This document shows, piece after piece, positions 3,046 to 59,957 of a DNA stretch of 64,000 nt (position 1 is its first letter; every line of letters starts with the position of its first letter). Under the pieces are notes generated by a model, which saw only the letters and a program-made list of their open reading frames with translations, searched no databases and was not told where the DNA came from. The translations under genes were made by a program, and so were the position numbers. Source of the stretch: Perkinsus chesapeaki ATCC PRA-425 (lineage: Eukaryota; Protista; Perkinsozoa); contig JAAPAO010000020.1 of the NCBI GenBank assembly GCA_013115145.1, forward strand, positions 1-64,000. Reading direction: 5' to 3'.

Positions 3046-4977
3046 TCAGGAAGGACCCTCGAAGACGCCAACCAACTCAACCCACGGTGTGGCGAGTAAT
3101 CCGGCTCTGGCTAGAGTCCTGCTCCAGGCTACCTTCACTTCACCAAGTGTGTTGCCTTCCCCTTGCCATGGAATAACGCATCGACCGGTTGTTGGAAATG
3201 CAGCCGGAACGTATACTAAAACTAGTCCAGTTGCCTCCGCTGGGATTCGAACCTGCATCCTTCCGAATACAATACTATCTTCCTCCCGAATTGAGCCAAC
3301 ATCCATGGTCAACTCTCCGCTTTGAAAGTCAATGTTGAATATAGGGAAAGTGTCAGAGCTTTCCTCGAGGTCCTCCAACGGAAAGTCCAACAGTCTGTCC
3401 GCTCGAAGTATCTCCCCTCTTCTCGCTTCCTCCCGGATTCCCTCCGGCACGCTTTCCTCTACAATCGCCGACGCCCGCCTCACCAAACTACTCCTCGTGA
3501 AGTATCCCTGACATCTTACAATTGCTGCTGGCCACAGCTCGCTTCCCAGAGCCGATACGAACTTCAAGGCATCACCGTTAATTGAGCCCCACGGTGTAGT
3601 GAGCTGGCAGACAATGCCAGCTACGTCACCACGCTGTCGGAAGCCATTGCGGCCAAGCTCATCGGCCAACTCGAGCCCGGAATTCGCTTCGACCATCCGG
3701 CCGCGTTTAGCAAAATCAAGCGGTGAGATTCTAAAGTGCTCCAGCTGGTCTCTGAGGATGGACCACAGGCCATCGCCTTCCTCCGGCATCCATGATAGAA
3801 ACGTTCCAACATACCCTCCTGCCAACAAACAAGGTACAACAGAGTGGCCTAGTCCAGTCAAGTCTATCACACAACCTTCATGCGGAAGGTCCCCGGTTCC
3901 AACCCCGGCAAGACCATCTCTTCTCACACTGCTGGCCACCATCATGTCAACCTCCGATGCCGTGGTCACACCCTCTACGTAAGATCCATCTACCAAAACT
4001 GACAGCAACGAATCTTCACACGACACATCAACGACTATCCTTTCACCGCTCTCAACCTTCCCCGGCCGGCACGGATACACCGCATAGTCCCAATCACACT
4101 GGCCAACACTGGTGATACTAACATCAACATAAAGATCAGCCTCCCACCAAACCAGCACGCATGCGCACGTTCCGCCTTCCTTTACTGTCACTTCCTTACG
4201 GCCAAGACCCTCAATTCTACCCGTCATAAAATCAGCTCGACATACCTCGAAGTCATCTGTTAGTTTCCTATACTTGAACCCTTGGTGAATGCTAGCGTAT
4301 CCTCCCTCCAGAGCGACGCCCTCTGTGAAATAATATCCCCTTTCCGAGATCAATTCAGATTCTATAATCGCCCCATAAACTCGACCGCTACGAGGAATCA
4401 CCACCGCATTCTCCGCCAGCTGCCCTCGATTACGTAAGTCCCTGACAACCTCCATGAACCTCTCCCCGAGGAGGGCACAGTCCATAAGTTCGGCAACCAC
4501 CATGTCGGCCGGCCGAGCCAAAGCCAACTCAGACGAGTCGCTTTGGATCACATTTACTCGAGGACCGCACGCCCGTCTGGCTACTGAGCAAAGCGCCCAG
4601 CTGCAATCACACGCTGTTATTCTCACCCTCGCAGGAGCTGCCTCTGCGATGTAACAACTCAGTATACCAGTGCCGCAACCAATATCGATCACGTGATCGA
4701 TTTTATCTCCTCGATCTCTCATCGCCTTTACGATGGCTGCCCGGTACGCTCGATTTCTACCGCCATCGTTGAGCATGCGGATATGCCACTCATCCACACT
4801 ACTCCGTCGCAGCCGATCTCTAACCTGCGCCAACAAAACCCGCACAGGTTCGATTCGCGCCTCCGGCATTTTCTCCAATGAAAGAAGCCTCTTCCACCCT
4901 TCAGAATAGCTCTGCTCACCATCAAGTCGAAGGATGCTCTCCAGCTGCCTAGCCACCGCTGGAGGGATCGACATCAT
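3046..4977 (-). CDS. Protein arginine N-methyltransferase, PRMT7/PRMT9-like double-domain type, intronless
   Basis: 643-aa ORF with WHIRMLNDGGRNRAY, motif I VIDIGCGTGILS, double-E loop VAELMDCALLGE, and a degenerate second module. Confidence 0.88.
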   Translation of the reverse strand: MMSIPPAVARQLESILRLDGEQSYSEGWKRLLSLEKMPEARIEPVRVLLAQVRDRLRRSSVDEWHIRMLNDGGRNRAYRAAIVKAMRDRGDKIDHVIDIGCGTGILSCYIAEAAPARVRITACDCSWALCSVARRACGPRVNVIQSDSSELALARPADMVVAELMDCALLGERFMEVVRDLRNRGQLAENAVVIPRSGRVYGAIIESELISERGYYFTEGVALEGGYASIHQGFKYRKLTDDFEVCRADFMTGRIEGLGRKEVTVKEGGTCACVLVWWEADLYVDVSITSVGQCDWDYAVYPCRPGKVESGERIVVDVSCEDSLLSVLVDGSYVEGVTTASEVDMMVASSVRRDGLAGVGTGDLPHEGCVIDLTGLGHSVVPCLLAGGYVGTFLSWMPEEGDGLWSILRDQLEHFRISPLDFAKRGRMVEANSGLELADELGRNGFRQRGDVAGIVCQLTTPWGSINGDALKFVSALGSELWPAAIVRCQGYFTRSSLVRRASAIVEESVPEGIREEARRGEILRADRLLDFPLEDLEESSDTFPIFNIDFQSGELTMDVGSIREEDSIVFGRMQVRIPAEATGLVLVYVPAAFPTTGRCVIPWQGEGNTLGEVKVAWSRTLARAGLLATPWVELVGVFEGPS

Positions 4978-6260: not shown

Positions 6261-9200
6261 TCAATCCTCTCCTTCATAGACTCCTGGATGCTCCTGGAAA
6301 TAATACCATACTTCCCCCAACTCCTACCCACACCTACCGGTCGGTCCTCGTCCTCCCCCACATCTATAGGCTCGGCTGTCTGCTGCTGCTGCTGTTGTTG
6401 CTGTTCTACATCTACTACCTGTGGCTGTTCATCATCCTCAGGTATCTACTCTATCACATGCCAACCTCCCCCTACCCCTCTCACCATACCTCCGCCCCAA
6501 TAACAGCTCCTGCCTCTGGTGGCAATGGTTGTGTCGGCTCTGTCACCTTCGCTGCTGCATCCGCTGTCTCATTTGCTAGATAGGAGCTGACAAGGAATCC
6601 ACGTCTTCAGAGTATGTGCGTGGAAACAACGACAATCACCAAGTTGGGAACTTCTTTCATGCGTAATGAACGTGAACGAACGAAACTAGTGTGTCCTTCC
6701 GGATATTATATAACAGTAGGCTACTACACTACAGTATTATACTACACTNNNNNNNNNNNNNNNNNNNNNNNNNNNNNNNNNNNNNNNNNNNNNNNNNNNN
6801 NNNNNNNNNNNNNNNNNNNNNNNNNNNNNNNNNNNNNNNNNNNNCACTATATTATATAACAGTAGGCTACTACACTACAGTATTATACTACACTATATTA
6901 TATAACAGTAGGCTACTACACTACAGTATTATACTACACTATATTATATAACAGTAGGCTACTACACTACAGTATTATACTATACCTCCTTGTTCATTCC
7001 CATATTACCATTTAAACGGATATTTGCTAGATTGTTTAACAAATTCCTCAGCACCCCATCGACTCTCAAACCGCACTATACAGCTCTCTTCCCTCCATAT
7101 AAAATCACGTACACCTTTAACATCCAGCACCTATATCAAACCGTGTGCATGCGTGCAAAAAGATTCTCAGAGCTCACTCTGAAGTACTCCATAACAACAG
7201 GCACTGAATCAAAGTCCGAGTCCATCTCCTCCAACAGTATTGCCCTGGGACGGTTGTCTAGAGTCATCCGATCTTGGGACTGACAAAGTGATGCGTTGAG
7301 GAAATACAAGATTTGCAAGATTTCTCAGTGCCTACTTCCTTGGATTGGTTCTTTTGCAGTGCCTGCATTCCGGCGTACCGCGCTCGAATTGCCGCGTCCC
7401 GCGCCTGTTAGAAATAGTAAATAACCCAGCCGAGATTCGAACCCACAACCACGAGCCCTATACCACCTTAGCCTTCTCAGCCTTCTCTTTCTGCATATCC
7501 TCCGACAGGGAGTGCATCTGCTCCTTAACCTTCTCTAAACATTAAGACAATTGAAGTGCCCCACCCCGGAATTGAACCCACGACCTCCCAACCCACCTAG
7601 CAATTTCTTGTACTTCTCTTTCTGTGCTTCCGACGTCCTAAAGCATCAAGCTCAAGCCTATGGTAATCCCCTTATTACTTGTCATCCGTTAGTTTAGCCA
7701 AGAGCTGCTTTACTGTCTCAGACATCCTAGACAACACCGCAACCCGCTGCATCTCTTGAGCGTGCTTAGCCTCCCGTGCCTGATAAAATATGAAACGGTT
7801 GATCGATTTAACGTCACACGATCACTTCCTTCGGCATATCAACATTGCCGGGACTAATTTATTCCACCACTTGTATCGTTCCAAAAATACAGCACATACA
7901 ATCCAATAAGGACGTCTTTTTTTTTGTGTCGAGAACTGTCCCCTCTCCCTCCTACCGCTCTCTGTTGCTGATGTTCTGCGTTCTCCAATACCAGATTCCC
8001 GGTATGACGCGGCTGTTGCTGTCGGAATCCTATCACAGCTGCTAAATCCTATCATTGCTCCTCATTACCCTTTCCACCAGGGCCTCCTCCTCCTCCTTTA
8101 CCGCCCCCAACTCTACCACTGCTCGGGGAAGGACCTGAAGACCATAAGCTGTGCTTCAGTAGCATACGACAAGATACTCCACTCTGCAGTGATATTTATA
8201 AATATATCTATTGACAAGAAACTACTAAATGAAGTTTATACTCATTATTATACCGACAACTCGAAATTTAACTCCGACAAAAACAATACCAAATCTCCTC
8301 CAAGTCCAATGTGAGTTCACCTCAATTCCCAAATATCGAAATTTACTATTCAAATCGCCTCTCAAGCTCCGTACAAACAATGGGGACTTCTCAAATGCCA
8401 ACACTCGCGAACAACCATTGTACTATAATATCCAAAATGAGCCCTCCAAAGTCGAGAGCTCCATGCGACTTTTCATAGAGCCCGACATAACCCAATACTG
8501 AGCTCTATGTTATATATCACACCGACCCAGTATTACTACTACCTCCTCCGATCTGAGGCACCGTCGCTGACGTTGGTGGACTAGGTGGCAAATTAGTGAC
8601 TTGCCATTTCACCTGACGCAGGTTCGATCCCCGGCAAGTCTGTTTCTGCTACCTGTATCTCCGGATGACCAAGAACAGGTTCCGCCATCATTGCTATTGC
8701 TGATTGCCGATTACTGAGGTGACATACAACTCAGACATTTCAAGGGAAGCAATTCAACCGAGGGTTTGATCAACAGTACTGAAGTATCTTATATCCCAGC
8801 CACACCGAAGACGCTATAAGGGGTACAATCAATCTCAAATTACATGACTCAAGATGAAGGAAGCTCGTAACTACACAAAGGCCTCTCCTCAGTAAGTCTG
8901 ATCGCGAAATCTGCTCCGTTTCACAGAGAAGGACAAATCCATTATCCACCACTGCTAACAATAGCCTTTGCTGCAGTCCCGCAACAGTCCCCCTCCCTTT
9001 ACTACGTAAACTCCACTGTAGCATTGCCTTCCTCCAGCTTGCAGTGGACGCCGCTAACCTCCCTAAACACAGCCACTTACCCTTCGATGACCGCCGCCGA
9101 CGATGGACCTTATATTACCCGTATTTCTGGCAATGTTGAAACAAAGCTGGCAACGATACATCTGACGGAATATTGCTAAGTATCTAATCACCATCATCAG

Positions 9201-59076: not shown

Positions 59077-59707
59077 TCATGGCAAGTATTCACTCAGGCG
59101 ATCTCTGACGCCTTCTTGAAGGGCCGCCATGATCGGCGGCCAGGCCTCCTCCGTGTAGGTGTATGGATCAGGAATGCTCTCCAGTGTAAGCATCTCGATA
59201 CGCGTGCCAGCCTAAGCAGGCAGCTGCTACCAATTCGTTCCTCAGATGAAAGCACGCACGCCGCACTGCTTGGCTAAGGCCTTCAAACGCTCGACGTGTC
59301 CCTTGTCCATACCTTAAGCAACTCGTGATCGAGCTAAGATATCTCCGGTGAGCTGATTCAAGAAACCAATCACCACCATCATACGGTTGTACGCCGGTAA
59401 GAACTCGAAGCGAAGAGGACCGCACCTTCCTCGACGCATGTTTCCGTTCCTGCGTAGTATCGTAACCTTGCGCAGATAACAACTTGATCGCCAAAGGGTT
59501 CATGGGCTGGCCCGGTTGAGCATCGAGACCAGCTGACCTGATGATTCCAGCTCCTTCCCGCAGACCTAGCCACCTGCCCTACTCGATATTAGGTATATCC
59601 TCCGATGATTTGGCGAGAAGATGGTATGAATAATACTGGGCCACAGCTGACCGACAGGTGTTCCCTGTGCAGACGAATAGTATGTCTATCGGGGCGGCGG
59701 CGCTCAT
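59077..59707 (-). CDS. Low-molecular-weight phosphatase (LMW-PTP fold) with YwlE-type P-loop, multi-exon; not captured as such in the ORF track
   Basis: MSAAAPIDILFVCTGNTCRSAVAQ, IE|SAGLDAQPGQPMNP, KHASRK, GMDKGH, IPDPYTY...GVRDRL; 45- and 46-nt introns restore the frame; middle splice ambiguous. Confidence 0.88.
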
Positions 59708-59957
59708 GAGAACGCTGTGCGGCCGCAAGGTGCTAAAGTACCGCAACACAAGGCGTATTAAGTGTCAGCTCCCATTGGAAATCAATTTCATGGCGCGTGA
59801 CGTCGCCGCTTCATCTATTAATCGAATTCCACCTCATCATCATCATCCCAATCGTCATAAGATTCCTCTCTCTCCAGTGTTGCCTCCCTCTGAAAAGTGA
59901 TTACCATACAACCAGAAAAGGCGCGGAGACTTCGGCGGTACCCCCCAGCAGGCCACC

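Follow-up and report, generated by a model that had tools for sequence, protein, structure and literature searches.

A transcribed YwlE-like phosphatase locus of Perkinsus chesapeaki, most likely a pseudogene or null allele

We analysed a phosphatase locus on the minus strand of a 64,000-nucleotide stretch of Perkinsus chesapeaki DNA (positions 1-64000 of contig JAAPAO010000020.1, GenBank assembly GCA_013115145.1), hereafter called the window. At this locus the DNA preserves a whole low molecular weight phosphatase (LMW-PTP) domain as a collinear relic, interrupted by introns with predicted lengths of 45, 73 and 48 nt. Most likely, the window copy of this YwlE-like phosphatase gene is a pseudogene or null allele that is transcribed. 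A preliminary description had proposed a candidate phospho-arginine (pArg) phosphatase; the LMW-PTP family and the YwlE-type P-loop behind that proposal stand, but a TAA lies in frame and the mRNAs observed carry neither the MD motif nor the catalytic Asp in frame.

Structure and family assignment of the phosphatase locus

The window has a G+C content of 50% and bears ordinary eukaryotic genes, i.e. an ammonium transporter, a SUV3 helicase and methyltransferases; an assembly gap of 96 N is found at 6749-6844. Direct translation of the minus strand placed the start codon ATG of the phosphatase gene at 59707-59705 and the P-loop CTGNTCRS at 59671-59648, with its nucleophile Cys, Thr at position 5, Arg and Ser (codons TGC ACA GGG AAC ACC TGT CGG TCA; the position-5 Thr, which corresponds to T11 of YwlE, is the ACC at 59659-59657). 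The SAG motif follows at 59536-59528, the (G)MD motif at 59313-59305, the DPY motif at 59169-59161 and the TGA that ends the homology frame at 59079-59077. The letters and position given earlier for CTGNTCRS were exact, and the SAG, MD and DPY motifs named with it are present. The order and spacing of these motifs match the LMW-PTP domain (Pfam LMWPc, PF01451), the distance from Cys to Asp being 112 residues at the locus versus 111 (C7 to D118) both in P0003, a YwlE-like protein of 149 residues, and in A1, an alignment of 43 bacterial YwlE-like relatives of P0003.

The motifs sit in different frames, and joining them needs three introns; neither this nor the TAA described below was mentioned in the preliminary description. 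Exon 1 (59583..59707, supported by Pfam LMWPc, PDB and HMM matches) comprises the start codon, beta1, the P-loop and alpha1 in 42 codons, the last of which is split, and is followed by intron 1 (45 nt, GT..AG, 59538..59582), which is spliced out in RNA. Exon 2 (59426..59537, from hhalign and Pfam LMWPc) carries SAG as well as alpha2 and runs to H-A-S-R-K. A second intron (intron 2, 59353..59425, of 73 nt with donor GTGCGG) is predicted from homology and is kept in all RNA contigs that cover it. The relic of exon 3 (59260..59352, from the HMM alignment) holds beta3 and the M-x-x-x-H block with a stop inside, i.e. the TAA at 59314..59316, which takes up one codon at a hydrophobic beta3 position of the translation and lies in the one frame bearing both MD and DPY. 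An ancestral intron 3 (48 nt, donor GTGCGT, 59212..59259) is predicted from homology, its use not being seen in RNA; it has a common acceptor with a 101-nt intron (59212..59312, donor AAG/GTATGG directly after the TAA) that is spliced out in RNA. In the homology frame, exon 4 (59080..59211, from hhalign and a six-frame scan) encodes the D-loop (I-P-D-P-Y) together with the C-terminal helix. Alternative forms of intron 1 (17 nt or 63 nt) and acceptors skipping the TAA were discarded, as they gave a wrong frame or too short an alpha1, and RNA backs the 45-nt intron. The idea of a tRNA-derived intron was also dropped (no match in Rfam or ARAGORN).

For the homology searches, exons were compared one by one with each resource, an X being placed at the stop where exon 3 was read through, and a YwlE-like HMM was built on the 43 proteins of A1, several of which carry the NCBI name 'low molecular weight protein arginine phosphatase'. 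Exon 1 alone matched Pfam LMWPc with an E-value of 9e-5 and scored 36.4 bits against the YwlE-like HMM (HMM positions 2-29). The corresponding values for exon 2 were E 0.037 (positions 33-65) and 15 bits (HMM positions 37-68), and hhalign aligned this exon to A1 with P 3.8e-7 over columns 37-66 of P0003, at about 33% identity to the profile. By the same program, the MDKGH block was aligned to A1 with P 0.014 (HMM positions 85-100) and the I-P-D-P-Y block was laid onto V-L-D-P-F of A1 with P 0.0022 (HMM positions 113-142). Among 3523 six-frame segments of the window compared with the HMM, exon 1, exon 2 and the DPY block ranked 1, 2 and 3, and the MD block 13; the three top-ranked segments are collinear, on one strand and within 630 bp. 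Given the Pfam match, the HMM score and these collinear top ranks, the LMW-PTP motif set at the locus is, as judged from sequence comparison, not a product of chance.

Twelve of the 15 residues that are invariant in the 43 YwlE-like proteins (C7, G9, N10, C12, R13, S14, P15, S37, A38, G39, H89, D118, P119, G121 and Y127) are kept at the locus, the exceptions being P15 (Ala), G121 (Thr) and Y127 (Trp). Nearly invariant positions are also altered (M16 to V, E18 to Q and D80 to R). Among solved structures, the top match of exon 1 was Bacillus subtilis YwlE, followed by other LMW-PTPs and ArsC; exons 2 and 4 gave no family match against solved structures and NCBIfam. The YwlE P-loop signature reported in the preliminary description is likewise a letter-for-letter match. 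The phosphatase locus can be assigned to the LMW-PTP family on its motifs and profile matches, and its closest relatives appear to be bacterial YwlE-type arginine phosphatases, according to exon-wise scores that are dominated by the P-loop.

With YwlE (B. subtilis, PDB 4kk3 and 1zgg), the locus shares an identical P-loop CTGNTCRS including the Thr at position 5, an equal spacing of SAG, M-x-x-x-H and D-P, and a single domain of about 150 residues. It differs from YwlE by its eukaryotic setting (three introns, a spliced leader, an in-frame TAA and a catalytic half lost by splicing), by having CRSA for CRSP, DPYTY for DPFGG and Arg at the nearly invariant D80, and by low identity outside the P-loop. 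Human ACP1, Escherichia coli Wzb/Etp and Mycobacterium tuberculosis MPtpA resemble the locus in belonging to PF01451 and in the layout of the catalytic Cys, Arg and Asp, and the D-P-Y start of the Perkinsus D-loop recalls the DPYY of canonical LMW-PTPs; these canonical enzymes, however, have Ile at P-loop position 5 where the Perkinsus gene has Thr. Exon 1 scored 14-18 bits against ACP1, Wzb and Etp versus 36 bits against the YwlE-like model, and exons 2 and 4 gave no match to ACP1, Wzb, Etp or MPtpA at E up to 10. Where ACP1 combines C-L-G-N-I-C-R-S-P with D-P-Y-Y, the locus has Thr for Ile, Ala for Pro and D-P-Y-T-Y. The thioredoxin-coupled arsenate reductase ArsC of the pI258 type (TIGR02691), which has a CTGN(S/T)CRS-type P-loop, was the best NCBIfam match of exon 1, at 22 bits, a score far under the family cut-off of 174 bits. 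The redox cysteines of ArsC after beta3 (C82 and C89 of pI258 ArsC) are absent, this stretch reading M-D-K-G-H-V-E-R-L, and the only later Cys, in K-Q-C-G, lies about 13 residues beyond it.

To place the gene among annotated proteins, exon 1 was used in an exhaustive HMMER search of 1.84 billion representatives, which returned four matches at E < 1e-3, all bacterial or metagenomic; as the exon is short, ordinary LMW-PTPs fall below this threshold and the search does not judge distant kinship. The matches were two giant dikinase-LMWPc fusions, one duplicated ArsC-like protein and P0003, the best stand-alone relative, which stands among proteins named 'low molecular weight protein arginine phosphatase'. 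No eukaryotic protein carrying exon 1 and no product of the locus was found among these representatives, the genome's own proteome included (the methyltransferase ORF of the window at 3049-4974 was found exactly in NCBI and UniRef). Exact look-up of nine ORFs around the locus retrieved none of them (0/9) in the collection, and no candidate came from a word search in which exon 2, read through as far as it is free of stops, was the query. The phosphatase gene is unannotated and has no annotated close orthologue; nor did we find literature on Perkinsus LMW-PTPs.

Some of the proteins encountered deserve mention in their own right. P0001 (1679 aa), P0004 (2197 aa) and P0124 (3117 aa) are bacterial or metagenomic, one being a named Elusimicrobiota MAG protein, and combine a PEP-utilising mobile domain and a PPDK_N ATP-binding domain with LMWPc domains in tandem, two or five in number, of which several have degenerate P-loops; this dikinase-phosphatase array seemed unusual. 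In P0002 (244 aa, ArsC-like LMWP), the first ~108 residues are exactly repeated in tandem, which may be an artefact of assembly or gene calling.

The in-frame stop and the splicing of the transcripts

The TAA is best read as a point nonsense change and not as the consequence of a mis-drawn gene model, because exon 3, once an X stands for the stop, can be aligned gap-free to HMM positions 72-100 (a score as high was reached by 1/500 shuffles), because the predicted exon 2/3 junction reads S-R-K/L-T, identical to P0003, and because the residue count from this junction to M-x-x-x-H is exact if the stop stands for one codon. Removal of intron 2 restores H-x-S-R-K/L-T, and the codon replaced by the TAA corresponds to a buried hydrophobic position of the beta3 strand. 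DNA contigs of two studies (runs X1 and X2) and RNA contigs of X6 and X9 all show the letters of the TAA. The DNA contigs match the window without any difference; these DNA runs may include the source sample of the assembly itself and are thus not fully independent of it.

Could the stop be bypassed, so that the locus itself yields an active arginine phosphatase through readthrough, recoding or an undetected splice? All catalytic motifs are present in the DNA with the Cys-Asp spacing given above, but we regard this as very unlikely. TAA and TAG are stops in this genome, no GT-AG intron removes the TAA while leaving the MD block in frame, and the splicing that was observed loses MD and throws DPY out of frame. 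The genetic code is standard, with TAA and TAG acting as stops, since the ammonium-transporter ORF matches positions 2-396 of the 399 in its Pfam model and has a TAG as its stop. A reassignment of TAA/TAG to Gln does not hold, as the TAG in frame behind exon 1 is part of the 45-nt intron that is removed in RNA, and the ammonium-transporter ORF stops at its TAG.

Four 454 RNA libraries that carry the label of marine metatranscriptomes, all from a single study, contained the locus, and contigs of X6 and X9 were compared with the window; as these are low-depth contigs, isoforms cannot be ranked and a minor productive isoform could escape. Runs X6-X9 are small 454 'marine metagenome' RT-PCR libraries whose contigs match the locus without difference and bear the DinoSL leader; they look like spliced-leader-primed cDNA. 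In RNA contig X6 record 6, 19 non-genomic letters correspond to the DinoSL core (spliced-leader sequences are given in PMC3101222) and are joined to the locus at cag/C (59715/59714), which places the trans-splice acceptor at 59714..59716 on the minus strand; the mRNAs are therefore trans-spliced. The 5' UTR extends just 7 nt ahead of the ATG at 59707, the first in the message. Both the short GT-AG introns and the DinoSL-type leader agree with published features of Perkinsus (PMC3101222). The earlier statement that introns exclude bacterial contamination was borne out, GT-AG introns removed in RNA together with a spliced leader identifying a eukaryotic nuclear gene.

The joint of the 45-nt intron (59535/59581, cut +2) was found in runs X6 and X9 and in a diverged contig of a second copy. 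The 73-nt segment (59425-59353) was retained in 3/3 RNA contigs reaching it, from two samples, one of these contigs bearing the spliced leader; it was read through in X6 record 6 (59344-59535) and X9 record 7 (59312-59535). The joint of the 101-nt intron (59210/59312, cut +1) occurred in X6 and X9, and with this splice the MD block is lost and DPY no longer in frame. The observed message consequently consists of exon 1, then 59537-59313, then 59211 onward in another frame, up to a TGA at 59096-59094. Its predicted product has about 79 residues of the phosphatase domain, i.e. the half with the P-loop, alpha1, SAG and alpha2, followed by 75 unrelated residues, and has neither M-x-x-x-H nor the general-acid Asp. 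A complete LMW-PTP domain is not found in any single reading, the TAA parting D-P from the P-loop in the domain frame and D-P being out of frame in the observed mRNAs. The donors used in RNA are GTAGGG and GTATGG, and the homology-predicted unused donors are GTGCGG and GTGCGT; this contrast may reflect the donor preference of the genome or decay of the sites.

A product devoid of both M-x-x-x-H and the general-acid Asp-Pro leads us to read the window copy as a pseudogene or null allele. The changes at P15, M16, E18, D80 and G121, and the lack of an annotated protein with exon 1, fit this reading as well. The ancestor would have been a stand-alone YwlE-type LMW phosphatase gene in the Perkinsus nucleus, with four coding blocks, introns of 45, 73 and 48 nt and an mRNA trans-spliced to the leader. 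In the window copy, a TAA takes the place of one codon of beta-strand 3 in the domain frame. The mature mRNAs that are visible keep the 73-nt intron and lose 101 nt from the donor right after the TAA, and the truncated product should be unable to form the LMW-PTP fold or to finish catalysis. Isoforms spliced as in the ancestor and bearing the TAA would be absent from RNA through nonsense-mediated decay; the isoforms without the 73-nt segment may be lost in this way because the TAA then lies upstream of a junction.

Part of the evidence runs counter to a pseudogene. The out-of-frame reading (window 59094-59425, minus strand) stays open over 75 codons, for which the chance is about 0.04 at the stop-codon frequency of the window, and this open tail could hint at a product in use. 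The 154-codon ORF of the observed mRNA might accordingly encode a real protein, e.g. a phosphate-binding pseudophosphatase made of the P-loop half and a new C-terminal half; the message is mature, with its spliced leader and two introns removed, and is open to the TGA in the last exon. We hold this to be distinctly unlikely: the new half is rich in Arg and Ser, as is usual for out-of-frame reading, and has no family match, the four-stranded LMW-PTP sheet is impossible without beta3 and beta4, and the unused homology frame still retains M85, H89, D118 and P119.

A second copy and the question of arginine specificity

Within the 64-kb window, tblastn found no second copy of the phosphatase gene. 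RNA contig X9 record 8, by contrast with the contigs that match the locus exactly, is about 90-95% identical to the window, with the 45-nt intron at the same position, and is identical to it only over 59604-59635. In DNA run X2, these same positions form a 32-nt unitig of depth 117 between flanks of 64 and 58. Given this doubled depth and the diverged RNA contig, we infer that the isolate carries a second copy (allele or paralogue) at about equal dose and that this copy is expressed; no literature on the ploidy of P. chesapeaki was found. The second copy is seen over about 150 nt only. Its listed exon-1 differences (59636, 59642 and 59657) are third-position synonymous changes, the P-loop Thr codon still encoding Thr, and 30 visible letters further on stay in frame (A-A-K-G-Y-D-T-T). 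As the three exon-1 differences between the copies are all synonymous, the gene seems to have been under selection until recently, a second point that runs counter to the pseudogene reading.

It is accordingly possible, though we give it well under even chances, that the gene functions through this second copy, which would encode a full-length YwlE-type enzyme, possibly with a preference for pArg, the window then holding the null copy. Its presence at equal dose, its expression, the shared 45-nt intron, the synonymous exon-1 differences and the conserved Thr codon would fit such a situation, as would, for the pArg preference, the effect of a position-5 Thr on the specificity of YwlE and of the Drosophila phosphatase DARP (PMC7772506). 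Against it, the visible stretch stops short of the beta3 codon and of the C-terminal half, and the collection holds no annotated protein of such type. The fuller version, in which an intact YwlE-type phosphatase of bacterial ancestry that dephosphorylates arginine is kept as the second copy and the window copy is its recently inactivated twin, appears unlikely; if true, it would imply protein arginine phosphorylation in a perkinsid alveolate.

With respect to substrate, replacing Thr by Ile in YwlE and DARP shifts activity towards phospho-tyrosine, Thr favouring phospho-arginine (PMC7772506, citing Fuhrmann 2013). The preliminary description had based its candidate pArg phosphatase on this signature; a single Thr does not suffice to tell the substrate preference. 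The ancestral Perkinsus enzyme may have had a phospho-arginine preference, to judge from its P-loop. As the window copy does not deliver the catalytic half, the matter is moot for it, and the arginine-phosphatase idea survives for the second copy only.

Nor would a eukaryotic arginine phosphatase be unprecedented, Drosophila DARP/CG31469 being already known (PMC7772506). Like the Perkinsus gene, DARP (PDB 7btg) belongs to the LMW-PTPs of eukaryotes, has Thr as the fifth P-loop residue (CIGNTCR) and shows D-P-Y in its D-loop. It differs in being intact and active with a narrow pocket of its own, and exon 1 of the Perkinsus gene scored 18.1 bits against DARP versus 24.1 against YwlE.

On the reading that we favour, i.e. 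a transcribed pseudogene or null allele, the window copy would be a cautionary case, in which a catalytic signature is perfect and yet frame and splicing no longer yield the enzyme. It would also offer a small natural example of a premature stop that coincides with intron retention and with the use of another splice donor. If an intact, pArg-preferring copy exists, it would be a first lead to arginine phosphorylation in alveolates, and its history would probably have involved gene transfer from bacteria, followed by the gain of introns and the use of the spliced leader.
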